A DNA stretch of 64,000 nucleotides from Paraphysomonas bandaiensis (GCA_965644295.1 CBFFRP010000218.1:310001-374000), one strand, 5' to 3'; shown: positions 11,860-54,755, counted from the first letter of the stretch. Made by a program: numbers and translations. Notes: generated by a model not told the origin, from the letters alone.

Positions 11860-14800
11860 TTATTGGAATAGAAATCGCATATCATCAACAGTTAGCCGCA
11901 CCATAGAGCTTGCGTCGCCACCAACAGTGCCATCAAAGACGAGCTTTTTCTTTTCTTGTAGCCGCAATATGCGCTCCTCAATCGAATCTTCCACGATAAA
12001 GCGCGTGGCAAATATAGGCTTATGCTGTCCCAAACGATGAGTTCTGTCGATTGCCTAAGAATAAAACTGAACAGTCAGTTGACATAACGTATATATATAA
12101 ACCTGCATTTCAGCAGCCGGATTCCACCAAGGATCCATAATAAAAATATAATTGGCGGCCGTTAAATTTAACGCAACGCCTCCAGCTTTAAGAGAAATCA
12201 ATAACACGCTCATGTCAGGACTTTCGTGGAAATTTTTTATAATCTGCGGTAGTGTGTGAGTAACAAGGAGAGACAATTAACTCCGAGCACAACCTTGTCC
12301 CTTGCGTCTATATTCATACTTCCCACAAGCTTGGAACAGTTGATTCCCCCAAGTTGTATGCGATATTCAATGAGCTGCGCATATCAGATAAAAGACATAA
12401 ATACGAAGCTACTCACATCAAGAAAATTCACAAATTGGCTAAACACAATTGCTTTTGCTCCAGGATCCGCAGATAACATAAAGTTCAGCTCCTACGAGCA
12501 GCACTTATTGTGACGATACATTAAAATCCGATTACTATGTTACCTGCATTAATGCCTCCAGCTTGGTGCTTGACTGAAAAGAGTCCAGCTTTATTTTACT
12601 AAGAAATGATTTCTTTCTAGACTTCGATGAGTCCCATATCGACAGGCCATTATCGGGCAGCGTGGCACTATCACGAGGTTTCTCAAGTTCTACTGAAAGT
12701 GGTTTCTCACACTGTGGGCATACCGCAGAGTCAGTAGCAGATTCGGACTGTAAAACATTCAGATACTCCAATACACAAGGCTCACAGAAACAATGACCAC
12801 ACTGAGCTAATCTGGGCTCTTCAATTGGTTCGTGGCAAAAACCACAGGTACTAAGATCAGAATTCAACTCAGTAGATATTGCTGTTGACGCAGCAGCCGA
12901 TGAGTCATACGATGACATACCATTTTCGTAATATTTATCACTGTGCAGTACCAAATAAGGGTGATCAACTACTTGCCGCAATCTAATTAATATGTCAAAT
13001 ATATGCGCATAATTATGAAGAACTGTTCCCGATGCAACATAAGTATTAAACTGGGCTTGAGATTGGGTGTATAAAGCTTGGTAAAAATCTTCTTCTTGAA
13101 GATCCATTTTATCCATCCGTACTTTTACGATCCTATAATATATCTTGATGGTACGAAGTAGAATTTTAAAATGCCACACCTTTGAGGCAATTGAATATCA
13201 CTAGATCTCGTATTTTTCGTGCGCCGGAGAAGAATTTCGTCAAGAACCTAAGCGAAATTAGCTTGCAATAAAGCAACGCGTACTGACCTGCTCTTTTAGT
13301 GTTAACATAGCCCGTTTACCTTCTCCAATGTATCCTGTTCGTTTTATGGGGTTAAGAATGTGCTTATTAAAATGGCAAAAGTGCTGCATCGCAGTGTGCC
13401 CACAATCATCACAAAGCCCATTAGTGAATCTCTGACAAAGTATATCACTGTAATTGAATATATCCTTTCGTCAATATAACTTACATAATGCAAACTCTTA
13501 CAATTGCAAGACTTGGTTCGACAGAAATAAAACGCAAACGGATCCATTCGAAGAAACCTTACAAGTGAATATAATTCCCCGACGCGATTTTGAAGAGGAG
13601 TTCCAGTTAAACACCATTTATTCAACGAAACCAAATTAAAAACAGCTTTCGCGGTTGATGTACTGCGATCCTTTATTAGGTGGGCCTCATCTAACACTAC
13701 TCTGAACCAGGAAACTGAGTGCAGCAGAGATGGAACCGATTCGCGAGTGGCTTTTTTGGTAGCCAATGCAATCGCCTTTTCAACCTCCAAGTCTTCCCAA
13801 TCGTCATTCGCAATAAACTTTTTTGCCTTATACTTAGATTTAGCCTTGGAACTTGATGCATCATCATCTTCCTCAGAGCTCGAGGAAGCGCTGTCCGCGT
13901 AGTCACTGTCACTTGCTGATAAGCTCTTCTTACTAGATGTAATACGTTTACTAGATTTACCAGAACGACGCGACTTATTCACGCCGTTAGTACGCAGTCT
14001 ACTATCCTCACTTCCTTTCTTTTTAGTCCCTATACCTTTGGAGTTATTAGACGTTCGAGACTTCCTAATCATCTGCTTCTGGCGGTCAATATCATCTTCA
14101 CTGCTGGAGTCATCACTAGATAGCACTTTTCGTTTTCTACTCATCTTCTTTGGGCCCTTTAACTCAACAACGCTCCTATCCGACTTTGCCGTTCGAATTA
14201 TCCGCTTTTGTCTATCAATATCATCCTCACTGCTTTCTGAATCGCCCACTTCAAAGACTTCGGGCGCTTTTCGATTCAGATTACTTCTTTTCCTCTCTGT
14301 CTTACTCTGAGCAATTGTTCTCTTCGAACTTTCGCCGCAGAAATATTTCCTATGCATGCGCAACTTCTCGGGATAGTATTTCTTTCCACAAATGGAGCAT
14401 GTAATTTTTTTACCGGCAGTTTCGCGACGGTACTCCAATTCTAGTATTTTGTACGATGTTATGACAACATCAGCAGACTGCAACATCTTCAACGCATCTC
14501 GTCCTGCTCGACTATCCCCGTGATACACGTGCAATGTGAGCGAACCAGGCCGCGTAAAACGCTTAATTTCAGTTTGCCACTGACGAATAGCAACCGTCGG
14601 GACAACGACCAATGTATTCGCACGCAATCTATGATCCGGCTGCCTTCCATGTTCCTTGTCAGATCTAGAAAAAGAGTTATAATTTGAAGTATTCTAAATA
14701 TTTCTTCAAACCTACCTATCCCATGTCGACCTTTGTTCCCTACTTTGTTGTCGTGGGCGGTTTCCTAAGATTGTACTTATCGTTTGAATGGTGTTGTGCG

Positions 14801-16525
14801 TAACAATATACTGCGGTTGCTAATGTGAAAACACAGATGTCAACAGAAAACACGAACTCACATTGTCCGTGACGTAGAGGTGATCGGATGACTTGACAGA
14901 TATACATGCAACTTTGGTTTGCCTCAGTGGGGATATTGACGTAATATACCGACTACGCGTCACACATTTTTCTGCTTTGCTGGCATAGATTGAAGCTTTA
15001 GGGAAAATCGAGAAAGGATTAATATGCGTCGCAGTCATATCGATTTTTACGGTCCACTTGTTGCAGTAACCTGATATACCCAAACTACAATCAATTTTCT
15101 CAGCAATGCCACCCAGCGATCTCACAACATCTAACACTATATCACAGAAATATTGGCTTTCAGAAGTCAGTAATATATAGAGATGTTGGCCAGAACAGTC
15201 TATCTTCCCATTCATATCCAAAATACCCCTCAATATTTTAGTGCGGTGCTCTACACTACCCATTAAATATGGAACGGCAATTGATGGTAGTGGTGGATGT
15301 GAAGTAAAATATGGCGACAAAATTTGCTTGAACCTAGACTGTAGATTGTTCCCCATCACAAGTCTCTCCGTAAGTGTCGAGGTATCGTCCCATACATCGC
15401 CCATGATATTTAAAGTGCGCGAGAAGTGCTCCCATTCATTCTCATCGACAGTCAACGCAAGTGGTGTGTCGCAATTGACGGCAGAGGAAAGTAGAACGCC
15501 AAATGTATATGGGTCCAAGAGAAATGAATTACTGTCCTGCATAATCTCAAAGTGAACACTCTTGACTGTCGGGATTCTCCATGTCTTTCGGGGTGATGCA
15601 CAGAGATACTTCTTGGACATGTCATGATACAAATAACGCGTACTAAGAACCTGCCATGAATTCTCTCCCTCATCAGCAAGCCATAGATGGTCATCAGACA
15701 CTTCTACCCCACAGCCATCGTTCATCTGCACCCAAAACGTCTGTCGGACCCCTCTATGATATACACCTGTCACAGGTGTACCACAACCATTACTTCCAAT
15801 AACGCGGTCACCAACTTTGATATCCCCCATAGTCACCCAACCTACGGGAGTCAGGATACGAGAATCCAGCGGCTGTGCCTTACCCTACAGAATAGTGCAC
15901 ATTCTGAGCAACACAACAGCTACACTACAATACGCACCATTCCCATTTCATCGGCAAGTATCCCTCCACGCATCTGAGATTGCTCTTGATGAAGCATCCA
16001 CCCTAATCCCTCTTTTTGATAAGGTAAAAGCGGCATTAAAAGATCATCACCAGGATCTATAGGTATATTCCAATCTTTTCGAACAAGCTCATCTGGGTTC
16101 AGAGGAACCATATCTTGATCGACTTCATTCTGACTTTGCCGCACACGCTGTCTCACAAGGTGCTGTGCTGCAGAGTCTAATTCCGTGAATCCATCAAGAC
16201 TTTCCGCATTAACAATTCTTTTGTCAAACACTGTGCATGGAAGATGCTGCCATCTGGTGGAAATACCCCAGTCGCCGTCTACTATAATACCCACGCGAAT
16301 ATCTTTATGAGGAATTTTTGTGCCACATTTTTTGCATTCTGCTCGACCACTTTTAGCTTCTTCTACGACGTACTCGGGGATGCAAGCTTCAATGTGCTCA
16401 GTAGCCCGTGATGCGGGGCGAGATTGCTCGCTTACTGTGGTAACTACATCATCGAAATCACTGTCAGAAGAAATCACAATGACTTCTTTGGCTGTATCCT
16501 TTTCAATTTTCTTCTTTCCCCTCAT
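11860..16525 (-). CDS. RAD16: RAD16-like SNF2 helicase / RING E3 ligase with N-terminal PARP-type zinc finger; intein-containing precursor
   Basis: Likely ATG at 16525. Motifs in order: zf-PARP ([20 protein letters not shown]), Q motif [12 protein letters not shown], Walker [13 protein letters not shown][intein]TIQTIS, motif Ia [12 protein letters not shown], Walker [11 protein letters not shown], motif [24 protein letters not shown]3HC4 RING ([17 protein letters not shown]), [36 protein letters not shown]-terminus DDMRFLFQ* (TAA 11860-11862). Multiple GT-AG introns keep the frame. Confidence 0.93.
14793..15878 (-). mobile_element. Class-3 (Ala1, W-C-T) intein with degenerate LAGLIDADG homing endonuclease, 345 aa, interrupted by a spliceosomal intron
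   Basis: N-terminus GK|[14 protein letters not shown]; block B VSDDHLW; block [18 protein letters not shown]; after the intron, block G YIVTHN|T. Central DOD-like region: [37 protein letters not shown]. Removing it restores DEMGMGKTIQTIS. Confidence 0.95.
14811..14861 (-). other. 51-nt spliceosomal intron inside the intein coding sequence
   Basis: GTGAGT donor after ...GAC AAT, and CCGCAG acceptor before TAT ATT GTT ACG CAC AAC. Phase 0; contains an in-frame TAG (14820-14822). Confidence 0.9.
15885..15937 (-). other. 53-nt spliceosomal intron within Walker A, 6 nt upstream of the intein
   Basis: ATG GGA ATG|GTGCGT ... CTGTAG|GGT AAG GCA CAG CCG; phase 0. Confidence 0.9.
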
Positions 16526-16877
16526 TAGTGATGGTATTATCTTCGCCACTTAAGAGGAGCATGTACGAATATAGAGGTATGAAAAATGACGTCCAGTCTC
16601 GCCAGAAGAACAGAATCTGTGCGACTGAATTATCGCAGTCATAGAGCACATTCTACACATGTCCATGCGCTGTTTTTTTCATGTGGGATGGTATGTACAG
16701 TAGAGTAGGTACTGTAGATGCGGGAACAAACTCTCCTGCACAAAACGCCTATTTCTAAAACACCGGGTTTTATGTATAATCCCGAAACTAAAATGCAATC
16801 TCAGCCTTGCGAATTCCAGCCCAACCAAAGAAGCCATTAACATATCTGGATATCCGAGCGATATCATTACAATAATT

Positions 16878-41628: not shown

Positions 41629-41831
41629 TATATTATGTATTACGTACAAAGGTAGGTAGGTAGGTATGTACTCTGTATATATATATGAATTGTATAGATT
41701 GGATTAATTTGACCGTATTGGACCGTGGAAGTTCGGGCCGAGCGAAATCGACTTAGAAAAGGAGAACTGTTTTCCATGCCATTACTTTTGCGTTTTGCTT
41801 CTCTGTATTTGTGTCGCTTTGAGAGGTGAGG

Positions 41832-44800
41832 ATGCTCCGAGAGGTGCTGTCCTTCGCTCTGCGGGCTTGGCACTATGTTGTCACTTTATGTGGACGTATC
41901 TACTGCGTTATCTGCGTCCTGTCGAGGTTGGTACCGTCATGCAATGCTTTTAGTGGCGAACTTAATTTTCCAGCTTTCGACTGTATGGATATCAGAATCG
42001 GAGATTTCTTAGTGCAACGTTTGTGTTGGGAGTCTATTATAATAAAATTTAGGTGGTCGGGGTTGGAAATCAGTTGTTGCAGCGTGAAATGCGATGTTCA
42101 TATTCCGGATAGAAGTCGAACTTACACTAACAATGCTTCAAGAAGTAATGTCAAATGCGAAACAAGGCCTTTATGGCTGTCATTTGTCCCACCAGTCCAT
42201 ATAGAAATAGTGAGTTTGCTCCTGGTCGGGATATCAAAAGACTCTAACTTAGTCGAACTTAACATGTCTGCTCTTGATAGCAAAATAGAGAAGCGGCTGT
42301 TAAACCCTGCTTTCACTGTAGAAACAATGAATTTTCGTGTCGCTGGAAGGCATCAGGCTGTTAGTGATATAATATGCGCTGAGAAAATTAATTTTCGGAT
42401 TTGCCATCGAAATATATCCGTGGCATTAAATAGTGTTGAACTAAACGCAGATTTCAATACGTGTGACACGATTACTGACTTGCTGGGATGTCTTTTGCCG
42501 CCCCATAGAGATTGTGATGTTGAAGAAGGGGCAGGTGCTATTCAAGTTGAAACAGTATTGCAAGCTTACAAGAATAGCAACAATGAGATTGAAAAAAATG
42601 AAGATATAGGTAGAAGACAGAAAGACAGAGTTGGAGATGGGAATGCGTCGTGCTCGTACACTTGTTCACTTCCGCCCATGAAAGTTAATGTAGATATTGG
42701 AGTTATCGTTGTGGCAACAGTAAGCCGAGAGCCACCGTCCTCACGCCGACGACATTTTTCAATATGTGGAATTAATGTACAATACTCTACCTCACCAGTT
42801 TCATTCTCTTTACAATGTAAGCAGTATAGCGCTCAGCCGTTCGATACCCAACATTTGGTGGGATACGACTTAAATAGTGCGGGAAATTGGCTTATGGTAG
42901 AGTATGTTGATAAGCCCTGCGAAAGGGCTATGTCAAGTGTGAATGCATGCAGTCGTCACCCAGTACTATCTATTCATGTGCGCCCAGTTTTGTTACCTGT
43001 TTATCTCGACGATCTGTGCTCCGCCATGTTATTATGGAAGGATATTGTTTCGCTCACTGAAAGTAGGTATACACTCCGGGAACTCCGTTGCCGAAAATTG
43101 AATCGCATACGTGATACAACATCCCACACCTTCCGCCCAATTGAAGTGAATGTTCAATGCGATAGTGTAGATTTAGTGTTGTTAGTGCCAACATGGTTGA
43201 ATAAGCGATACCTGGTGTGGAGAACATGCGATTTTGGAATACGAACAATATGTTCCCCTGATCAAAACACCTGGTCACTGTGCTTATCAATTGGTAGAAT
43301 TCTGTCATTGATACAGTTTCCTGTATCTGAATCGACGCAGAAGCACGAAATTTTATCCCTAAACAAAGTATCAGTGAAATTACCTCTTCACGACCACGAA
43401 AAAGTACAATTTGCGAAGGTAGTTGAGTTCGTTGAGTCATCTCCAACAATGAGTTATGCCTATTGTTCCGAATGGTTGGAAACTAACTCATCAGCTCGTC
43501 GTATTGATCAGAGATGCTGTGCTAGTGTTGATGAATGTATAGTCTCGATATCTGACAGCGATGTAGCGGTTATTACATCAGTTATTAATGCGTTGTCGTT
43601 GTCACTGAGAACTTATGTCGCCCCTGAGGATTCATTCGCACGAATTTTTCACACCAGAAATATTCCCTGTTGTTGTCTGGATATGAATATTCATTCGTTC
43701 GAAGTAATCTTACAAAATCTTGCTGGCTCGAGTAAGTATAAGAGGTCGCCGCAAAAATTTCGGGTTGGCTCTCATGATATCGAAGTGTCTATGGCCCTGG
43801 CGCCTCCAGTTGTGCGTTGTGTCCATATTTCAACAGCATCCAGTCGTGTACAACTGACATGCTCCAGAGACGATATAGAAATACCACTTATGAATTTTGA
43901 CTTGTTTCAGCATACCAGCGAGAAGAGGAGGTTCACAATTGCTAAGTTAATATCTAGGCCTGTTGATATTTGGTTCTGCCAAGAGTCTAGTTATCCGTTA
44001 GCATTAGCCTTCGTGTCAACGGCATGTTACTTGCAGATTTACTGCCTATCTGGCCATATTGATACATCTGACTGTATAGCGCTGTCAGACTTTATCACTG
44101 AAAGCAAAGTGCAAACCTATCACTCTCGTGAGTGGTTTGTGCGGCTTTCTCGTAGGCTTCCGCATAGCGTTTTGGTTGTGCCATCAATGCATGTGAATAA
44201 TACATTGACTGCAGATATTTCTCCTCTTGTGATAGCTCTAGTAGATATTGAACGAACCCGCATCGATATGCTCCATCACTCTGTCGATGTTGGGTTTATA
44301 TTGGCAAAGTCGATTGGAATCAGTTCTGTTACGTACATTTTACCGGGGTTGTATCAGGTCAGCGGGCGCGTGCTTGATGTCTGCATCGCTGATCTCACAG
44401 AAGAGAAGTCATTTTATAAAAATGTTGTGGAATGTGTCCAATCTGAAAACGCTGCAGATGTAGCACGCCCTGTTGTTGAGTTTCACATGACGTCTTATTT
44501 GAATGCTAAGCCATTGCTGGAAGTCAATAGTCATAATCTAAGGGTCGTATATTTGCAACGAGCAGTAATGACCATCATTTCATATATAAGAGACTGTGCT
44601 CTGGCTGAATTGTTCAGATCTGTACCATATAAGTCCACACCTGTGGTTGTATCTGGTATTTGCAATGATGACCTCGTATACACTGCTCTCAGTCAAGCTT
44701 TACCTGTTCTTGACCCTGGAGTATTTCGGTTTGCCTGGAATATCAGCAATTCCGAGTTCCATTTACCTGTGAACAGCCGCAGTGACGATGGACTGGTTTT

Positions 44801-47800
44801 TGTATTTAAGCGGCTATATATGTACTCTTTGTATGTCGATTACGAGTTTTTTGGGAAAACTGGATACTCTATGGGGCCATTATGTTCGGACCGACATATA
44901 TGGCTGTCGAAATATTATGCTCTAAAATCTCTTTGCTCTGAGATAAGTACAACGAGTCGTTGCTGGGATGTAACTGCATATCCCAATCATCTACTGTCTC
45001 CCATTGCCTTTTCGCAATCTCATGACAGCTCAAACCTAAAACACGAAACCCAATTAGCCATGAATCTGACTGACTCTGTGATTTGCACATGGTGCTCTGA
45101 TAATACCATTGCGAAAGGGTTGAATATTGGTGCGCTGCTAACTATTCAGGAGGTCCACCAGGCTCCAAGTGGTTTGTATTCATCTGTATTCAATAGTTTA
45201 GGCTTTATATCTATGTACCCTTTAAATATATTTGCAACTGAACTCATGATTGAAGAGGTAGATTGGGTACTATCGAGAGGGCAGTATATGGCAATCGTGC
45301 TGCTAATTCAGCAGAATTTTCCGGAGTTAACTAAAGTGGTTCCCCCATTACCGTGCAGCGTGCCATGTAATGTACATTTGAACACCAATTTATTTGGAAA
45401 ACGGGCATTAGAAGACAGATTGCCGTTTCATATCACTGTACCATTGGATGTTGAGTATGGTCGGATTCATATGATTGAAGATAACAAAGAGTATTACCGC
45501 AGACTATTTTCGTCTCACCAGGCTAAGAGTAAATTCGTAAAAGATGAGAATTACCTCCTCTACGTAAGAGAAGAAACGGAGAATTTTGTCACACATTGGT
45601 TCGATTCAGAAGTTCGCTTGGAAACTGAGAATGACTGCGAAGTATTTGAACAATTTAATTGCTTTCAGGTACCTAACTGGTCATTTCATCACACATTTCG
45701 AAAGTATATGGAGTTCGGCTTCAAAAACTATGTCATCGCGGAAGATGATGTACTGAGTGGTGACAGTGGCAGCGACAGCGACAGTCGAACTAATCGAAGT
45801 GTCAACTCGTTGGATTCTATTGGGATAATATTTTTCACATCATTGGAATTTAATTTTTTGCGTCAGCATCACGGAGGTGGAATTAGTATAGTCGCGTCAG
45901 CTAAGGATTTTGTCATCACGAGAGGATCGAATTGGGATTCATTCCACAGTGGTTGTCGTCCTGAAGATATTGTTATGGATAGCGATGATGATTCTTTTGA
46001 TGAAAAAACTAGAGATCCACTGAACGTGTTGTATGACATCGATGATATTCCGGAAGAGTTTATTATCGTGAAACAGACTCCATGCCTCCCTGAATCGATT
46101 GATCCTCAAAGTTTCCCTGATGTCGAACGAAGGAGTATTCATTACTTTCAGAACGGAATGGCTAATTTGAGAAGGTGCATCGTAGAACTGGATGACTGCA
46201 TCGCAGTTGTGCATATTCCAGCTCTCATGCGCATCATTAATTTCTTCGTTGAGTGTATAACACTGACCGACATGAGGGAGAAAGACCATATTGATGTAGA
46301 TTTAGATATGGGTAGGTTTAATTTCAGAGCGTTGTTGGATGTTGAAATTTACGCCACGAACACTGTCGTTTGTTTTCCAAACTACACTTTCCAGTGTCAG
46401 TCGGATACTCGCGGGTTATGTGTTGGCATGGCGTCCCTTCAGTATACTCATACTTGGAGGGGGCTTATTGAAGCAGGCCCAGGGTGGGTGGGGATACAAG
46501 TCATCGTAGATATCGGAAGTGTGTTTATATCACCGCTGGATGAACTGGGTACTCAGGAAATTGAGTCCGTTGTTTCGCCGCTGAAACTCATGTTTTCTAG
46601 TCACTATTGTGTATCGCCACCTGCATCCAATGCGATGACACATTTTGAGGTTGTCCGCAGAGATGTAGATGTTCCATTCCCATCTGCTCAAGATATTCGA
46701 GAAAATCGTGCGTTGAGTGATCATGTTATGTTGCTCACTCTTAAGCCAGCGTCGCCACCCCATATTGCCGAAGATGACGAAGATGATGGGGTTATCTCAC
46801 CGAGGGTCCCAGATCATTTTTCGGAAAAATCACAGTTAATAGATATTAAAGTGTCTATTCCGGATATGATGTTTATCAATGCTGTACAGTCGTCATTATG
46901 TGATGCGTACAAAAGTCGCAAAATGAGACCACCTATCAGAGATAGTTTTCGTATATTGTTTCAGTCTTTTCACGATATAGCGCATACTTGGAGACTGACG
47001 GACATACTGAGTTATGTTCCCAACTCTGATTTGCCTAGTCTTCGTGTCAGCGACTTTATATTGGACACTGCTGACTTCCACGTTCTTATAAGAAACAATA
47101 CCTACGGAGTAAAGATTGCTAGGATTCTTATCAACGAACCACGATTTTCTTTCAACAAATCCCGTAAAGGTATCAATATTGCTGGTAGCCTTGACTCACT
47201 GTTATATTTACACAACCCCAAAATGGGCAAATTTGAACCGGCTATCGAAAGCTTAAAAGTAACGGCAATATGTGCCACAGACGTTACATCAACCTCGCAA
47301 GAGCGACCTAGTGGGGATCAAAGTCAACCTACCAGCAATACAACGAATAAGCTGCGATTCGATATGTACTTTGAACCCGTTGAAGTCAATGTTGCGCAAA
47401 GTATGTACGTTGGTACAATCGGAAAGCTTTCCTTGGGCGATGTTATAACAAGCAAATCTGCCAGTTTGCCAGTTTACCGCATTGTAAATAGACTAGGCGT
47501 TGCTGCAACATGTCTCTTAAATGTCGGTCGACGCGATGAATCAGTGGTATCTAAAGAACTGGGAGTGGATGAAGTACTGGCGGTAGATACGAGGCTATAT
47601 GATGCGCATCGAGGTGAGAGTAGAACGCGACAGCACTTCACCCGTGATTCAGACAAAAGTTTTTCGTATTCAGGACTGTCTTTCGGATTCAATAATACGA
47701 CAGATGAAAGTCACACCATTGAGTTGTTGTTTGAAATGGATAATCTGAAGTATAAGTCCCAGACTCCGGTGCCCATCGACAACGAAGGCTTATTTCAGTT

Positions 47801-50800
47801 TATTATGAAACCGATGATGAATTCATATCAGGCTCGTGAAAGGAATTTGACTGATGATTTTGTTGACATCAGTGCTCCGCCAGAGCTGTTGTATGCGCAG
47901 AAGCCAGGGAGTAACAATATCGCAGTTTTAATGAGTATGCGTGTAGTCGACACCAGTGGGACTCGAGAACTTGAACTTCGTAGTATTTGCTCGCTTCGTA
48001 ATGATACTGAGTGTGAAGTTCAGTTTCAGGCTGAGTTGTGTGGGTCCTCCGTAGATGTAACTTTAAAACCGGATGAAGAGTGGTTTTTGCCCGTCTATTT
48101 GATATCGTCTCAAACTTCGATTCATATGCGGCTCGCGGATCTTTTTTCAATTTTTAGGGGGCAGAATTCTAATGATGACCAACCGTCTCGGTACCTCGTG
48201 AAAGCCCTACCATCCCTATATTCGTTTGTACATACAACAACTGCATGGGTCGGGAGTTCAGTTTCTTTGAAAATGCGAGCGAGTCTCGTCACTATGTTTC
48301 GGACACATAGTATCGATAACTCATATGATGAACTTGCCCAGTGGACATGTATGTTACTGCCGGAGCCTCTAGATGTAGAATCATGTGGAGACGGTGATGG
48401 CACCTCCAAGACTACTAAGAAACGTCGCTGTGTTGTGAAATACCCGACTGCAGATTCATTTACACAGGAGTTTCTTACGCCTAGTAGCAATTCGCGTGTT
48501 CATACTGAGGAGTCCCCTACATCCACAGGAAGTACATTCCGCCGTTTTTCGATTCGACCAACCCCAAGCAAAAAACATTTGAATGATGTGCGTGAAAATA
48601 TGGAGAATGAGCCCAGCATGAGACAGGCTTCTGACATTTTGCATCAACGTATAGTTCCAAGTCGGTTATGTATTGTGGCTCCTATTCGTTTTGTAAATCT
48701 CTTTTGTCAACCCATTGTGTATCGATTTGCTGAGAAGAGAAGTGCTTTGAACTGTAGCGAAGGGACACTAATTGCTGGAGGAAGCATAAATCTCTACCAC
48801 AACCCTCTTCGGGGCCTGAATGTGAGTATTAGGGTTTTAAATTACAAGTGGTCGAATTGGATTCGTTTACCAGTGTTTCCACCCCATTCCAAGACATCTG
48901 AAGAGATTCTCGAGTCCCTGCGTCTCATTCACGAGGATCATCCGATTCGTGTTCCCCCACTTACGTTTAATGTTAGTTGTCATGATCGTAACGTGAAAGT
49001 GGTGTGTCCTTTGTGGCTAATAAATCGTACAGGCATGAATATACATTATGCCGAGGGTGTGTCAATGTTGCCTAGTGGTGAGCGCCTCTCTACTCGGTAT
49101 ATTCCTCATAGAGGGCAACAGCGAATTGAAACATCGCTGGTACATATACCACCCTCTGGTGTTCGTGAAGGTGTGCCTCTGGAGCGCAAAATATTTAAAA
49201 TTCCGATGAAAGACCGAGTCGGGCGACATAGCAGTATGATACTTCCTCGTGGGGGTCTCCTTCAGTTCACGGTGTGCTCTCCTTTCGACCACTGTAAAGC
49301 TGTAGTAGTCAGTCTACCTGGGAGTTGTACTGTGGATCTGTTAGTAATGGAAGTATTGAAAAAACTGTTGAATGCAGCTAACTATACTCCTTGGGTTAGT
49401 GATGGGCCACTGCCTCATGACCCAGCAGGATTTATTAACGGTCATAGTATGAAACCATCCGATTATCTATTGTTTCATCTCAGTGAGCAAGGCAGTACAC
49501 TCTCAGCCCATCCTAGGGCTCCTGTAGATATGCAGCTCATGGAAGACTCTGATTCAAAGCACTCTACGAGTGATGTATCAGTAGATGAATCGTTCTCGTC
49601 AAAGCAGACTGGTCATCACCATACCCTCGGCACTGATTATGGCGGATCCGATCTGGACGCTTTGATTTCATTGGGTTTAAATGTAACACCTTTCATCAAT
49701 GAGAACGGCACCACACTGAGAAACGATACTCAGCTGCATGCTGTACCAGAACCCCGACGATTACTTCTTTGTCACGCATCCGAGTTCAAAATTGTCGACC
49801 AGCTCGCAGGTGTGAAAATGGTACCAAAGAGAAAAGAGTCATCTGTTGTGAGTATGCTCGGTTTTAAGAAATATTTGCCGGTGATGCCGTTTAGGTATTT
49901 TGACGGCGATATACCGTTTAATCCAATGGGAGTACTGGGAATGTTTCCGTCATTTAGTGTGTGTATACCTAATGAAACGGAATGGTCTGACGCAGTTAAT
50001 GTACAAAAAGTTGACTTTGATGTGACAGGATCCCGCAATCTGGATTTGGTTGTATCGTCAAATTGCCAGACAACTCAATCTGAGTTATATGAACTCTCTC
50101 TGCTTGTGAAGCATGGGGAAGGCATATTCAAGGGCATTGCCGCTGTGACAATAGTACCAAGACTGATTTTATCATCGAAACTGCCGTTTGCTCTTCAAAT
50201 CCGTCAAGTTGTTTACGATGAAACTGGTGCAGTGACGGAGTCCTCAGCACCATTTATGTTACTCCCCGGATCTATTCAGCAGTTTCATCATCCACTGAGA
50301 CGAGGAACGAAACTTGTACAAATGATGCAGTATAGCTCTAGTAATGCTGACGAGAACTTATCGATGGAGTGGGGGGGTGAGTTAAGTCTAACTGTACTTG
50401 GAGTCACGCATGTTCGGCTTAGAAATCCTGATAAAATTGTTAATGTACGCGTGGAGTCTGTCGGATCATCACTTTATGCTACCTTGTCATTGCAAAACGC
50501 GAAATGGCCTCCCTATCGCGTCGAAAATATGACATCATTCAAAGTCCGGGTGAAGCAGGTCTGTAAAAAACTCAAGCGGGAGCCGTGTCAAGAGGATACT
50601 GTTTCACCTCGATCATCCATACCGTACGCATGGGATTATTGTTTCAATTATTCTACAGAGAAAATGCTACTTCAAGTGGACTTTGCTCAAATTGGAAACC
50701 GGTGGACATCTATTGAGTTTCCAATGAATGAAGTTGATCATACATGTGAGATTGCGTTGACACGACTTTTACCGGACCTTCGACACCCTATAACTGAAGG

Positions 50801-53800
50801 AACCGTTGATGTACGATCCCACGGATCATCTGACTGGAAGTCAGCGTACTGCGTGGTGCATAATGATATGATGTACATGTTTACCAATAGTATGATGAAT
50901 GAAATCGTTGGTGTCATTAACCTGTCATTGCCTAACCCGTCAAGTGACGAGGACGATATGGCTCGTGACCGGATGATGTTTGCCTCAGTTAGACTGCACA
51001 CCAAACGTGAATGGGACATCACGTCCATGTTTTCGAGCACGATAGGACTACAGTCAGCCCCAAGTGAACTGGACGGAATGAAGCTGTATTTTGAACGACT
51101 TCAGTTTTGGGATGTAAATTCTCTTCGTCGTGCGGCAGTGCGTATCGGTGCATGTTTAGGTGTATTTGAAAGCATTGATTTATCTGAGGACCCTTCTGGT
51201 GACGAATCATCGTCAGGCGAGGCTAGTGAGGTTGAAACCGCCAAGAGCTTCTCTGTTCACCACAGAGAGTTTGCTATGAAAGAACTGCGTTCCGTTTTGC
51301 GGAAAGGATATACTGTCGATAATCTGGTTAGTATAGTTTCAGAAACTCCGCTGTTATGTGCAGATATTCTCAACGCCCTCGTAGTTGTCGGCGAGGCACC
51401 GAATGAGAAGTATGCCTACTATCTGCTGAAGGAAATGTGCAGCAGAGCTATAATCAAGCGAGCGAAATCAGAGAAGTTTCTTCACACCGAAATTTCTGAT
51501 TCCTCTGTCGACGTTTCGACATCCAATATCGTGGCTGGTCTGCAGTTTTCAGACTTGTTACTTATTTTTCCACCTAGCCTTGCGACAGAGCTAAGTATAT
51601 CAACAGCAGAGGATAACGAATTAGAACCCTCACGAGAGTCATTTATCAAATCTGCAAGACCTAATTGCGAGTATCGATTCGAAGTTTCATTTGGATCTTC
51701 GATGTATAAATTTCGGTGCTCATCGGAGGCGGATTTATGGCGATGGTTATATTCGATTCGGCTCTGTATTGAGAAGACATGGGTAGAACATATTCAGCAT
51801 ATAGATAGACATTCTACTGGCAATGAGATATCGACCGTAGACTCACTCGAAACAACTGTAAAACTCAAAGTACGAACAGATGGACCGATGAAAGTGCTTG
51901 AACTCACCGAGGAATCTGCACTATTTCCGACTGCAGATAGCAGTGAAGTCGAGGCGGATACTGCTTTGGGATCAGGTGAATCACACGACGAATCAGAACC
52001 ACACGGCGATGAATTGAAACCGCCATCTGCAGAGGTTAATGTGTCTGTGTTTTTCCCTTCCATTGGTTTCTCGCTTGTTGACAACGACCCGACGGAGTTG
52101 GTCTACCTTAGATTTAGAGATATCCAGATATCAATAGAGAGGACGACACAAAGAATGCTCTCTGCATTAACAATTCAATATATTCAAATCGACAACCAGC
52201 TGTTAAATCCGCTCTATCCTGTCAGTTTTAGACCTCGCACGAATCATTCCATCAGTGGGGATTGCGGGGATGGTAAGAGTCAAAAGAAAGTTCTTATGTT
52301 GCCTGGACTTCAGCAGATTGGGGATGACACTTTCCCGACTGTACATGGTTTTATACAACAGCGCTTGGATGTTGGGACGAGTACAACTGCATTCGGTCTC
52401 ACAACTACCGAGGATGAGTCAGATTTACTGTACTTTGACCTTTTCTCTCTGTGGATTGCCCCCGTTGAGTTGTCTATTGATGAAGAAATATTTGTACGCG
52501 TATTAAGAGTATTACAAGCTCTTCGGTCGGCAAATTCGAAGGCCAAAGCAGGGAAAATGGTAACTGTTGATGGAGAGGCTCTAAATGAAAAAGACCCTTA
52601 TTGTGCATCAGCTTGTTTTACGGCATACCAAACGTTAAACTCGGCTGGAGTGAATATCTATGTCTTGCATTCGTCCAATACTCGCCCAGCGTACTTGTCA
52701 AAGAATATATACTTTTCACTACTCCAGCTTCATCCTGTAGACCTTGTTTTAAGCATTCGATCAACACCGGATTTCAAAATCAGTACCACTGAGGATAATT
52801 TTTTAACACTAGCTGTTCGAGTTGACTACGGTCGAATTCGACTCAATGCTCTTATGATCAATAATGTGTTTGGAATGACCTCATTTATTACGTCGATATT
52901 ATCTAAGCACTATACCTATGCTGCACTTAGCCAAATATATGCGTTAATAGGAAGCACAGATGTCATAGAAGGTTCAGTGGGTTTACTATCTAACCTTGGA
53001 ACTGGAGTGTATGACTTGTTTTATGAGCCAATAGAAGGATTGCTGGGAGATGAACAGACATTCATTGAAGGTCTCTCCAAAGGAAGTAAGAGTCTTGCTA
53101 CTCGAGCTATTGGAGGCACATCTGCGTTTACCAGTAAGATCACAGGTGGTTTGGGTAAAGGTATGTCCCTTCTGACTCTGGACAGCCGTTACCAAAAGTC
53201 CCGAGAGAAGGACCGCCTCAAGGCTGCCCAATCCGTTTCGGAGGGCTTGTACTACGGCTCGTATGAGTTTGGAAAGAATGTATATCAGGGCGTTACAGGA
53301 ATAGTTGTTGAGCCGTACAGAGGGTGGGTAGAAGAGGGGGGTGTGGGTTTAGGCATGGGAATAGCGAAAGGAATCCTTGGCGTCGCTCTCAAGCCAGCAG
53401 TTGGTGTCCTGGATCTTGCATCCAGAACAACAGAAGGTATTCGCCATGCAGCTTTCAACACTCGTCTGGAAGCAGATTACCTGAATTCATCTGGAAGGTG
53501 TCGTCTACCACGACAGTTTGGGCGAGATGGCGAGCTCCTCTTTTACACGACGCATCTATCGACTCTGCAGATGATTGTCGATAAGCTGACCATCCCTACG
53601 CGAGAGTTGCGTTTCTATGTCGTCCATGCCCTCCCAATTGTGCGAAGTTATTTTGACGCACAGTTATCTTCTGAAGGAACAGGTGGTCAGAGTATAAACA
53701 GTGAGATCAGAGGCTATGCATTAGGTAACAAATACTTTGTTTTGACGAGTGTAGACCGGATTATGCTATTAAAAGTTGAGTTTATTCCTAACAAACCAGT

Positions 53801-54755
53801 TATCAAAGTCAGTATATCATGGACATGTCCCACTGACATGATTGAGCAATTCTATAGCGATTCGAAGGAAGATACGCTATTGGTGATAAGAGAGGACAGT
53901 CGACCGCTTATTCAACACGGGGAGCCCTGGAACTCGCCGTACCCAACTATTCAAGATCCGTTCTTGATGGATTATTTTGTCTTCCAAGAGTGCTTAGAGA
54001 AACTCCTCGGTCAAAATTTGGCGCGAGAGCACCCCATGGTGCCAGATCGCGATAAGGCTATGTGCATCACTCTCAGCCGCAAACGAACGGGTATTAAAAG
54101 TATTGTACATTCTACGACACGGCACGAGTATCGTTTGTATAAATATGTCCTCTATGAGTTTACCGAGATCCCTAAAGAAATCTCTGATCAGCCATACAAG
54201 ATAACAGACAGTGGGGAAGCGACTTGTAGAGGTTCTCCTGAGGTTGTCTTTAATGCTCTCTCCAGCGTCGGTACATTTTTTGAAGAGGTGTTTGAGACGC
54301 GTATACCTTCGCGAGTAGAGTGCGAAACAGAGGTCGAGGAAACTCAGATGCTGCTTACAACTGCTCTCCCTCTGATTGACATGAGGGTATGTGGACCCGA
54401 CCAGGAGAGTGCGGCACATTTTTCGATTACGTTGAAGAGAAGAAGTGCTTCTACAGATTTAGAGTTGATCAAACGTGAAGATTTAAGCAGTCGATTAAAA
54501 CTGTCAAATAGAGATTCGTTAAAATTGATATTTGATAGTAGGAGGGCGGCTCAAAATTGGAAAATTTATATTGCCGAGTCTTCAGCGTCAGTGATGCTGC
54601 CTTCTGGAGCGGCTTCTGGTTTATTTTCTTCACAGGTATTATCGAACTCTGTGAAAAGGAATCTTGTAATTCCCCTCAGCGGAACAGACTTACGACTGGC
54701 TGAAAACCTAAAAATAGAAATTGCAAAAAATTTGTCGCGCCGAGAAAGTCTGTAG
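41832..54755 (+). CDS. VPS13: VPS13-family bridge-like lipid transfer protein (~4300 aa)
   Basis: Single ORF with first ATG at 41832. Motifs FEPAIE, YRIVNRLG, LWLINRTG, WPPYRVENMT, DGPMKVLEL, IGFSLVD, IQIDNQL, LHPVDLVLS, the Gly-rich ATG2_C region GIAKGILGVALKPAVGVLDLASRTTEGIR, and RLPRQFG. Confidence 0.9.
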   Translation: MLREVLSFALRAWHYVVTLCGRIYCVICVLSRLVPSCNAFSGELNFPAFDCMDIRIGDFLVQRLCWESIIIKFRWSGLEISCCSVKCDVHIPDRSRTYTNNASRSNVKCETRPLWLSFVPPVHIEIVSLLLVGISKDSNLVELNMSALDSKIEKRLLNPAFTVETMNFRVAGRHQAVSDIICAEKINFRICHRNISVALNSVELNADFNTCDTITDLLGCLLPPHRDCDVEEGAGAIQVETVLQAYKNSNNEIEKNEDIGRRQKDRVGDGNASCSYTCSLPPMKVNVDIGVIVVATVSREPPSSRRRHFSICGINVQYSTSPVSFSLQCKQYSAQPFDTQHLVGYDLNSAGNWLMVEYVDKPCERAMSSVNACSRHPVLSIHVRPVLLPVYLDDLCSAMLLWKDIVSLTESRYTLRELRCRKLNRIRDTTSHTFRPIEVNVQCDSVDLVLLVPTWLNKRYLVWRTCDFGIRTICSPDQNTWSLCLSIGRILSLIQFPVSESTQKHEILSLNKVSVKLPLHDHEKVQFAKVVEFVESSPTMSYAYCSEWLETNSSARRIDQRCCASVDECIVSISDSDVAVITSVINALSLSLRTYVAPEDSFARIFHTRNIPCCCLDMNIHSFEVILQNLAGSSKYKRSPQKFRVGSHDIEVSMALAPPVVRCVHISTASSRVQLTCSRDDIEIPLMNFDLFQHTSEKRRFTIAKLISRPVDIWFCQESSYPLALAFVSTACYLQIYCLSGHIDTSDCIALSDFITESKVQTYHSREWFVRLSRRLPHSVLVVPSMHVNNTLTADISPLVIALVDIERTRIDMLHHSVDVGFILAKSIGISSVTYILPGLYQVSGRVLDVCIADLTEEKSFYKNVVECVQSENAADVARPVVEFHMTSYLNAKPLLEVNSHNLRVVYLQRAVMTIISYIRDCALAELFRSVPYKSTPVVVSGICNDDLVYTALSQALPVLDPGVFRFAWNISNSEFHLPVNSRSDDGLVFVFKRLYMYSLYVDYEFFGKTGYSMGPLCSDRHIWLSKYYALKSLCSEISTTSRCWDVTAYPNHLLSPIAFSQSHDSSNLKHETQLAMNLTDSVICTWCSDNTIAKGLNIGALLTIQEVHQAPSGLYSSVFNSLGFISMYPLNIFATELMIEEVDWVLSRGQYMAIVLLIQQNFPELTKVVPPLPCSVPCNVHLNTNLFGKRALEDRLPFHITVPLDVEYGRIHMIEDNKEYYRRLFSSHQAKSKFVKDENYLLYVREETENFVTHWFDSEVRLETENDCEVFEQFNCFQVPNWSFHHTFRKYMEFGFKNYVIAEDDVLSGDSGSDSDSRTNRSVNSLDSIGIIFFTSLEFNFLRQHHGGGISIVASAKDFVITRGSNWDSFHSGCRPEDIVMDSDDDSFDEKTRDPLNVLYDIDDIPEEFIIVKQTPCLPESIDPQSFPDVERRSIHYFQNGMANLRRCIVELDDCIAVVHIPALMRIINFFVECITLTDMREKDHIDVDLDMGRFNFRALLDVEIYATNTVVCFPNYTFQCQSDTRGLCVGMASLQYTHTWRGLIEAGPGWVGIQVIVDIGSVFISPLDELGTQEIESVVSPLKLMFSSHYCVSPPASNAMTHFEVVRRDVDVPFPSAQDIRENRALSDHVMLLTLKPASPPHIAEDDEDDGVISPRVPDHFSEKSQLIDIKVSIPDMMFINAVQSSLCDAYKSRKMRPPIRDSFRILFQSFHDIAHTWRLTDILSYVPNSDLPSLRVSDFILDTADFHVLIRNNTYGVKIARILINEPRFSFNKSRKGINIAGSLDSLLYLHNPKMGKFEPAIESLKVTAICATDVTSTSQERPSGDQSQPTSNTTNKLRFDMYFEPVEVNVAQSMYVGTIGKLSLGDVITSKSASLPVYRIVNRLGVAATCLLNVGRRDESVVSKELGVDEVLAVDTRLYDAHRGESRTRQHFTRDSDKSFSYSGLSFGFNNTTDESHTIELLFEMDNLKYKSQTPVPIDNEGLFQFIMKPMMNSYQARERNLTDDFVDISAPPELLYAQKPGSNNIAVLMSMRVVDTSGTRELELRSICSLRNDTECEVQFQAELCGSSVDVTLKPDEEWFLPVYLISSQTSIHMRLADLFSIFRGQNSNDDQPSRYLVKALPSLYSFVHTTTAWVGSSVSLKMRASLVTMFRTHSIDNSYDELAQWTCMLLPEPLDVESCGDGDGTSKTTKKRRCVVKYPTADSFTQEFLTPSSNSRVHTEESPTSTGSTFRRFSIRPTPSKKHLNDVRENMENEPSMRQASDILHQRIVPSRLCIVAPIRFVNLFCQPIVYRFAEKRSALNCSEGTLIAGGSINLYHNPLRGLNVSIRVLNYKWSNWIRLPVFPPHSKTSEEILESLRLIHEDHPIRVPPLTFNVSCHDRNVKVVCPLWLINRTGMNIHYAEGVSMLPSGERLSTRYIPHRGQQRIETSLVHIPPSGVREGVPLERKIFKIPMKDRVGRHSSMILPRGGLLQFTVCSPFDHCKAVVVSLPGSCTVDLLVMEVLKKLLNAANYTPWVSDGPLPHDPAGFINGHSMKPSDYLLFHLSEQGSTLSAHPRAPVDMQLMEDSDSKHSTSDVSVDESFSSKQTGHHHTLGTDYGGSDLDALISLGLNVTPFINENGTTLRNDTQLHAVPEPRRLLLCHASEFKIVDQLAGVKMVPKRKESSVVSMLGFKKYLPVMPFRYFDGDIPFNPMGVLGMFPSFSVCIPNETEWSDAVNVQKVDFDVTGSRNLDLVVSSNCQTTQSELYELSLLVKHGEGIFKGIAAVTIVPRLILSSKLPFALQIRQVVYDETGAVTESSAPFMLLPGSIQQFHHPLRRGTKLVQMMQYSSSNADENLSMEWGGELSLTVLGVTHVRLRNPDKIVNVRVESVGSSLYATLSLQNAKWPPYRVENMTSFKVRVKQVCKKLKREPCQEDTVSPRSSIPYAWDYCFNYSTEKMLLQVDFAQIGNRWTSIEFPMNEVDHTCEIALTRLLPDLRHPITEGTVDVRSHGSSDWKSAYCVVHNDMMYMFTNSMMNEIVGVINLSLPNPSSDEDDMARDRMMFASVRLHTKREWDITSMFSSTIGLQSAPSELDGMKLYFERLQFWDVNSLRRAAVRIGACLGVFESIDLSEDPSGDESSSGEASEVETAKSFSVHHREFAMKELRSVLRKGYTVDNLVSIVSETPLLCADILNALVVVGEAPNEKYAYYLLKEMCSRAIIKRAKSEKFLHTEISDSSVDVSTSNIVAGLQFSDLLLIFPPSLATELSISTAEDNELEPSRESFIKSARPNCEYRFEVSFGSSMYKFRCSSEADLWRWLYSIRLCIEKTWVEHIQHIDRHSTGNEISTVDSLETTVKLKVRTDGPMKVLELTEESALFPTADSSEVEADTALGSGESHDESEPHGDELKPPSAEVNVSVFFPSIGFSLVDNDPTELVYLRFRDIQISIERTTQRMLSALTIQYIQIDNQLLNPLYPVSFRPRTNHSISGDCGDGKSQKKVLMLPGLQQIGDDTFPTVHGFIQQRLDVGTSTTAFGLTTTEDESDLLYFDLFSLWIAPVELSIDEEIFVRVLRVLQALRSANSKAKAGKMVTVDGEALNEKDPYCASACFTAYQTLNSAGVNIYVLHSSNTRPAYLSKNIYFSLLQLHPVDLVLSIRSTPDFKISTTEDNFLTLAVRVDYGRIRLNALMINNVFGMTSFITSILSKHYTYAALSQIYALIGSTDVIEGSVGLLSNLGTGVYDLFYEPIEGLLGDEQTFIEGLSKGSKSLATRAIGGTSAFTSKITGGLGKGMSLLTLDSRYQKSREKDRLKAAQSVSEGLYYGSYEFGKNVYQGVTGIVVEPYRGWVEEGGVGLGMGIAKGILGVALKPAVGVLDLASRTTEGIRHAAFNTRLEADYLNSSGRCRLPRQFGRDGELLFYTTHLSTLQMIVDKLTIPTRELRFYVVHALPIVRSYFDAQLSSEGTGGQSINSEIRGYALGNKYFVLTSVDRIMLLKVEFIPNKPVIKVSISWTCPTDMIEQFYSDSKEDTLLVIREDSRPLIQHGEPWNSPYPTIQDPFLMDYFVFQECLEKLLGQNLAREHPMVPDRDKAMCITLSRKRTGIKSIVHSTTRHEYRLYKYVLYEFTEIPKEISDQPYKITDSGEATCRGSPEVVFNALSSVGTFFEEVFETRIPSRVECETEVEETQMLLTTALPLIDMRVCGPDQESAAHFSITLKRRSASTDLELIKREDLSSRLKLSNRDSLKLIFDSRRAAQNWKIYIAESSASVMLPSGAASGLFSSQVLSNSVKRNLVIPLSGTDLRLAENLKIEIAKNLSRRESL

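Follow-up and report, generated by a model that had tools for sequence, protein, structure and literature searches.

A spliceosomal intron within the coding sequence of a class-3-type intein in a RAD16-like helicase gene of Paraphysomonas bandaiensis

The helicase gene and its intein

The window analyzed in the present study, namely the whole stretch of DNA under consideration, comprises 64,000 nt of the Paraphysomonas bandaiensis assembly (GCA_965644295.1, CBFFRP010000218.1:310001-374000), and the gene of interest occupies positions 11860-16525 on its minus strand. This gene, which was delimited from Pfam matches, ten spliced joints, and the assembled open reading frame (ORF), consists of 11 exons, the joining of which gives a precursor of 1392 aa with the intein included. 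Pfam assigned zf-PARP, SNF2, RING, and helicase C domains to the product, and the arrangement, with an inserted RING domain, a helicase C domain, and an additional zf-PARP domain at the N terminus, is that of a RAD16-type SNF2/RING helicase; orthologous fragments bear the JGI name 'DNA repair protein RAD16'. A search of the 62.6-Mb assembly found the locus once. All ten introns of the gene have GT..AG ends and lengths of 40-53 nt, and most of those other than the intron nested in the intein are common to orthologues. The large exon at 13485-14664 (minus strand) encodes a long Ser/Lys/Asp-rich low-complexity insert within the SNF2 domain, and also contains two copies of one 10-residue peptide and a C2H2-like motif that Pfam matched weakly (E = 0.02).

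An in-frame insert of 345 codons, together with the nested intron, extends over 14793-15878 (minus strand) and separates K198 from the Thr of the Walker-A GKT (ADEMGM^GK/intein/TIQTIS, in which the caret marks a host intron and the slashes mark the intein borders). These borders were defined by the empty sites of two orthologous loci, L036 and L042, which read GKTIQ without interruption. The insert interrupts a conserved host site that is empty in homologues; this placement, its matches in the PDB, and a THN/T terminus, which consists of a C-terminal His-Asn followed by a +1 Thr, identify it as an intein. On the minus strand, block B is represented by His-Leu-Trp at 15681-15689, the His and Trp of which belong to the class-3 signature, align to PDB entry 6bs8, and are invariant; block F lies at the end of the upstream exon (14862-14915), with the codon for its Cys, invariant in family alignments, at 14904-14906; block G (YIVTHN, 14793-14810) opens the downstream exon with six codons and is the last beta-strand of the intein; and the +1 Thr codon (ACC, 14790-14792) is the T of the host GKT, as the empty sites also indicate. 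The exon upstream of the nested intron, therefore, carries blocks A, B, and F together with a degenerate LAGLIDADG domain, and the exon downstream carries only the last six intein residues before the C-extein begins at the +1 Thr.

In class 3 inteins, the Cys of block F acts as the nucleophile, and the Snf2 intein of D. radiodurans is an example of this WCT type. The intein in the window begins with Ala1, without an N-terminal nucleophile, and its AQPL start recurs in all relatives, while the WCT residues, found in HLW, CISV (KVACISV, block F), and THN, are invariant or nearly so. The sequence-only reading had singled out block G as the catalytic block, a description that was too simple for this class because the Cys of block F resides in the first exon. 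Sequence matches in the PDB were the class-3 DnaB1 inteins 6bs8 and 6rix and the gp41-1 intein entry 6riz, with H..W and C aligning to 6bs8 and C...THN aligning to 6riz; a PDB search with the 49-aa peptide spanning blocks F and G returned no match. By these features, the intein that interrupts the Walker-A loop of this RAD16-like helicase is of the class-3 type. Regarding the middle part of the intein, a family profile matched the LAGLIDADG domains of PI-SceI and I-DmoI. Both motifs in the window (motif 1, ...GVLLSSAV; motif 2, ...GILDMNG) are acid-less, as are those of the orthologous RAD16-type inteins, all of which lack the catalytic acids, and the homing endonuclease is predicted to be dead.

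A search with the first intein exon retrieved only relatives with at most about 35% identity, which were mostly bacterial or phage P-loop proteins (PhoH, AAA, DnaB, and SNF2). An exhaustive search yielded 11,872 relatives, with no RAD16 orthologue among the best 150 of these 11,872 representative matches, and no closer relatives were found in searches of JGI metagenome contigs and viral contigs. In 15 aligned relatives, the frame reads GK/AQP...LYVTDx[FY][IV][VL]THN/T, with blocks F and G contiguous.

Removal of the nested intron from the transcript

The intein ORF (14820-15836, minus strand) reads LYVTDN, continues into GTGAGT, and ends at an in-frame TAG (14820-14822), so that retention of the intervening segment leads to a stop after 13 extra codons. 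The sequence-only reading had, on this basis, proposed a 51-nt phase-0 intron of the form GTGAGT...CAG at 14811-14861 (minus strand), similar to the other introns in size and style, and had named GACAAT/TATATT as the junction expected in transcripts. When transcript contigs from four public runs were aligned to 12000-16600, this junction was found: one contig each in X1, X4, and X5, which derive from three studies, skips the 51 nt (joint 14810/14862), with CT..AC ends on the plus strand and zero positional ambiguity. The intron lies between the codons for Asn537 and Tyr538, and its removal joins GACAAT to TATATT to give LYVTDN/YIVTHN/TIQTIS, the codons that follow it being TAT ATT GTT ACG CAC AAC ACC (YIVTHN/T). 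The C-terminal His-Asn and the +1 Thr are, as had been claimed, encoded contiguously with the remainder of the intein only after RNA splicing.

The X1 contig (4354 nt) contains the joint of the nested intron together with those of nine others (48, 50, 42, 52, 47, 40, 53, 51, and 53 nt), which agrees with the claimed likeness of the nested intron to its neighbors. The three runs carry three organism labels, and each is at least 99% identical to the window. They are labeled 'RNA?' by guess, and we infer that their contigs represent spliced mRNA because all ten introns, namely the nested one and the nine others, are absent from them. Across the four runs, none of the contigs includes the segment 14811-14861. 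Contigs of X9, which is with certainty a polyA metatranscriptome, contain seven other joints of the gene and part of the intein; none of them extends over 14772-14925. With its GT...AG termini, its absence from mature transcripts, and its typical size and style, the segment has the properties of a U2-type intron, and TTGAC/CTGAC-like motifs are visible by eye in the intron sequences. These results confirmed that 14811-14861 is a real spliceosomal intron within the coding sequence of an intein. The joint is far beyond chance, since it restores the ORF of 1392 aa and rebuilds a motif that runs unbroken in all 15 relatives; spliced LYVTDN/YIVTHNT aligned without gaps to each of these intron-free sequences (15/15). 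For one relative with contiguous blocks, an AlphaFold model (pLDDT 77) places the last two beta-strands at residues 306-309 and 312-315, and the point equivalent to the intron falls in the turn between them.

The 51 nt may, in principle, represent a strain-specific indel or an assembly error, a concern to which a comparison limited to RNA runs gives some room. However, the segment has canonical GT..AG ends and is removed with nine other introns in one contig, the fraction of the words of the stretch that is present amounts to 0.97 in X18-X20 and to about 0.8 in the spliced runs, and five independent genomic contigs of orthologues have an intron at the same place; we regard the likelihood of such an artefact as practically negligible. 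An intron-less retrocopy was also considered as the source of the contigs and was rejected because the locus is single-copy. An origin from an introner family was similarly rejected: a 71-nt query spanning the intron matched only itself in the 62.6-Mb assembly, which makes these 51 nt unique in the genome.

Two further introns flank this region. An intron of 53 nt at 15885-15937 (minus strand), the joint of which was found in all four runs, precedes the intein by two codons (ADEMGM^GK), and a 51-nt intron at 14665-14715 (minus strand), supported by a spliced transcript joint, lies 32 codons downstream of the nested intron and forms one edge of the 95-nt exon in which block G is followed by the first part of the C-extein. 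The latter intron is common to the orthologous loci L040, L042, L045, and L046. At 12948, 15288, and 16496, all covering transcript contigs differ from the window (G>A, T>C, and A>G on the plus strand, respectively), which was seen in four of the four runs at the first two positions and in three runs at the third; a difference between strains or assemblies is a more likely cause of these mismatches than editing.

Conservation and history of the intein and its intron

A search with the N-terminal exon recovered 119 orthologous fragments, the contigs of which were examined together with those of ORFs resembling one orthologous intein. The sole named relative for this exon was the chrysophyte Ochromonadaceae sp. 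CCMP2298 (59% identity), whose contig ends before the intein site. In the five intein-bearing orthologues with DNA, a GT..AG segment directly follows LYVTEN and directly precedes F-I-[VI]-T-H-N-T, with lengths of 41 nt in L038/L039, 45 nt in L040/L041 (from the DNA of L040, the L041 contig ending before the site), 38 nt in L045, 49 nt in L046, and 50 nt in L047. These segments are predicted to be introns at the same codon boundary as 14811-14861, in five of five inteins with DNA. The ORF of a sixth, P0321, which is known from the ORF only and has zf-PARP, SNF2, and RING as neighbors, comes to a stop one codon beyond LYVTEH. The inteins of the orthologous loci share 38-41% identity with that of the window, and the exteins share 53-66%. 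The suggestion in the sequence-only reading to look for the intron in orthologous inteins was thus rewarded, and its view of the intein as sufficiently old for an intron to have arisen in it received support from the boundary shared at this level of identity.

The nested introns themselves, including that of the window, vary from 38 to 51 nt and occur in frames 0, 1, and 2, and reading through them leads to outcomes that range from an immediate stop to a stop-free insert of 15 aa. No obvious similarity was noted among the orthologous intron sequences, as judged by eye. The 45-nt intron of L040 (L040:2665-2709) is in frame and stop-free and was read through by the gene caller (P0320); its retention would add 15 residues between blocks F and G without truncation. 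P0082 was considered as a decayed intein without block G, which was rejected on the grounds that, in its DNA, FIITHN is intact and lies in a different frame after a 38-nt intron. Five further orthologues are devoid of the intein (L035, L036/37, L042, L043, and L044).

Two paralogous inteins of this class-3-type family occupy the same GK/T site in two other SNF2 genes of the genome: one in a SWR1-like gene (G000:C125:130011-130970 = L002:1501-2490, plus strand), which is 39% identical to the intein in the window, and one in a SMARCAL1/HARP-like gene (G000:C123:62168-63220, minus strand; L003), which is 36% identical. No internal intron is present in either of them or in their SWR1- and SMARCAL1-type metagenomic relatives. 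In the intein tree, eight eukaryotic SNF2 inteins formed one group against the sampled prokaryotic inteins (100/99). The inteins of the window, L002, and L003, together with their metagenomic relatives, suggest past spread between paralogues, as in Anaeramoeba. Upstream of the helicase domain of the SWR1-like gene, L002:23-1294 encodes three to four near-identical acidic, Ser-rich repeats of approximately 109 aa (MLKNESEIPIEQLRAMYGG...).

Considering the 53-nt intron immediately upstream of the intein, an intron at the same or a neighboring position was found in at least 11 SNF2 paralogues, whether or not they bear an intein. In these paralogues (within L005-L034), the intron is short, of phase 0 or 1, and placed on or next to the G-L^G-K codons of motif I; where an intein is present, as in three of the genes, this motif-I intron is 5-6 nt from the insertion point of the intein, and in others it lies at the empty site. 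Its presence in all three intein-bearing paralogues raised the idea that this intron was transferred together with the intein, which was rejected since at least 11 SNF2 paralogues have the intron regardless.

The intein is nuclear-eukaryotic, as the sequence-only reading had concluded from the intron; this is supported because the host gene has ten introns that are spliced from transcripts and because polyA metatranscriptome contigs cover the gene, including the intein. Nuclear inteins are rare, and whether they are recent viral or bacterial arrivals or old residents is debated. To our knowledge, spliceosomal introns are gained only in the eukaryotic nucleus, and we know of no way in which a prokaryotic intein relative could contain one. 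The nested intron, therefore, serves as a marker of long nuclear residence and common descent, because its boundary is shared at approximately 40% identity and its gain is confined to the nucleus.

The trees allow two histories. The monophyly of the RAD16 inteins was compatible with the intein tree and weakly supported (63/5). In the extein tree, which is unrooted, the five metagenomic intein-bearing orthologues formed a clade (100/100), and the window grouped with two intein-less orthologues (86/86), such that at least two changes are needed, either two losses or one old transfer. This separation of the window from the other intein-bearing genes is what would be expected if the intein and its intron had moved as one DNA unit, with the patchy distribution due to horizontal homing rather than losses; the grouping of the eight eukaryotic SNF2 inteins and the presence of inteins in three paralogous genes of one genome also imply that the family has moved between sites. 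However, every RAD16-type intein has degenerate homing endonuclease motifs, divergence is greater between the inteins (38-41% identity) than between the exteins (53-66%), which is the opposite of what a recent transfer would leave, and two losses explain the distribution in the unrooted extein tree equally well. We, therefore, consider movement as a unit to be unlikely. Old vertical residence with losses is favored because the catalytic acids are missing, the inteins are more diverged than the exteins, and most of the other introns of the gene are shared between orthologues. The intein is, on this reading, an old nuclear resident, and the intron an ancient gain in an intein that was already fixed.

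Ordered RNA and protein splicing and relation to known systems

Our main reading, to which we assign a probability of roughly 90%, is that 14811-14861 is an ordinary U2-type intron that was gained inside a class-3-type intein of a RAD16-like helicase, has been inherited with the intein, and has no special function that we detected; we call it constitutive from assembled contigs, which cannot reveal minor retained isoforms. The intron would have been gained once, in an already fixed ancestral intein, and then passed on with it, with some lineages losing the intein. Expression would proceed in a fixed order, of which the first step, the restoration of the reading frame by RNA splicing, was directly shown by the transcripts. 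In the translated precursor, the Cys of block F would then attack the N-terminal junction, after which the branch would be passed to the +1 Thr, the Asn would cyclize, and the GKT of the helicase would be rebuilt. This class-3 route is proposed for the precursor because the catalytic residues are conserved and the chemistry of inteins is established.

The sequence-only reading had raised the possibility that the two serial splicing steps act as a regulatory switch. Regulated retention of the intron, for example upon DNA damage, would gate the helicase by leaving a truncated N-extein-intein fragment or a target of nonsense-mediated decay (NMD), and the stop after 13 codons of retained intron, the DNA-repair type of the host, and minor isoforms to which contig data are blind all leave room for such a switch. 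On the other hand, the spliced form alone appeared in the three assemblies, there is no conserved retention product because length (38-51 nt), frame, and read-through all vary among the orthologous introns, with no obvious likeness of sequence by eye, and any one of the ten introns could serve as such a switch equally well, the nine others being similar in size. This part of the earlier reading did not gain support, and we consider a retention switch to be quite improbable.

It may also be asked whether the intein still splices. Were protein splicing lost, the intein would be a dead insert of 345 aa in the P-loop, and the product of the gene would be non-functional or repurposed; the degeneration of the endonuclease domain is in line with such decay. 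However, the splicing residues (the Ala1 context, H-x-W, the Cys of block F, T-H-N, and the +1 Thr) have all been kept in the six complete inteins, whose overall identity is 38-41%, whereas their endonuclease domain has drifted. Conservation of the extein is also good, and the transcripts are those of an expressed gene with all of its introns removed. A dead insert is, therefore, highly improbable, and an ordinary intron in an intein that is predicted to retain its splicing activity continues to be our preferred reading.

The intein shares Ala1, the Trp of block B, the Cys of block F, Thr-His-Asn, and insertion into a P-loop ATPase with the class 3 inteins of bacteria and phages, such as mycobacterial DnaB1 (6bs8 and 6rix), and its GK/AQPL...THN/T frame is common to thousands of PhoH, AAA, DnaB, and SNF2 hosts. 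In contrast to these prokaryotic inteins, it resides in an intron-rich nuclear gene of a eukaryote, its endonuclease is degenerate, and its coding sequence is split by a spliceosomal intron. Class 3 inteins were previously known only from bacteria and phages, according to the study that described nuclear, class-3-like inteins of Anaeramoeba, which reside in the P-loops of SNF2 and HARP/SMARCAL1 helicases and have spread between paralogues (PMC10710043). In that study, introns at or near empty intein sites were read as barriers to homing, and no mention of an intron within an intein was found in it (PMC10710043). Both systems, therefore, combine class-3-like eukaryotic inteins with an interplay between introns and intein sites, whereas the present organism is unrelated to Anaeramoeba and its intein appears to be old and immobile, with the intron nested inside (PMC10710043). 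The present results extend class-3-type inteins to a second eukaryotic lineage, after Anaeramoeba (PMC10710043).

A relationship between an intein and a spliceosomal intron at one site has also been described for PRP8 of Bathycoccus, in which the two are described as mutually exclusive (PMC3749507). Both cases concern nuclear genes of marine protists; the difference is that the intron of the present gene is nested in the intein, the two being found together and conserved (PMC3749507). In engineered S11 split inteins, the C-intein comprises 6 aa (PMC3620165), and the break point is identical to that reported here, with the C-terminal six residues forming the last beta-strand that ends in His-Asn. 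The engineered inteins are split as proteins and splice in trans, whereas the split in the present case is at the level of the gene, and RNA splicing would give a contiguous cis-splicing intein (PMC3620165). The loop before the last beta-strand, which is the engineered S11 split point, is thus where the intein gene tolerated interruption. Nested elements are known at the RNA level; they include twintrons and a group II intron that interrupts the endonuclease ORF carried by a group I intron (PMC4801052). The requirement for a fixed order, in which one element has to be removed before the other acts, is common to such nested introns and the present case, but the former are self-splicing RNA within RNA, and the latter is a spliceosomal intron within a protein-level intervening sequence (PMC4801052).

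An intron within an intein was not reported in a survey of eukaryotic inteins (PMC5784728) or in a paper on an RNA-polymerase intein (PMC1635734), and phrase searches of the literature, which mostly lay outside subscription journals, found no report of one. Even if this is the first documented intein-nested intron, a role beyond that of a passive marker, either as part of a cassette spread between protist lineages or through gating of the helicase by the order of RNA and then protein splicing, is doubtful, with a small chance of being correct. The nested intron is mechanistically an ordinary intron in an unusual place, and it is real, conserved, and instructive. Gene callers that are blind to this intron end the intein ahead of its His-Asn and overlook it, and similar cases may therefore hide in the genomes of protists.

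As for the remainder of the window, an Rfam scan of its whole length gave no match, and an unbroken ORF of 4309 aa occupies 41826-54755 on the plus strand, in a genome whose genes are otherwise rich in introns of 40-53 nt.
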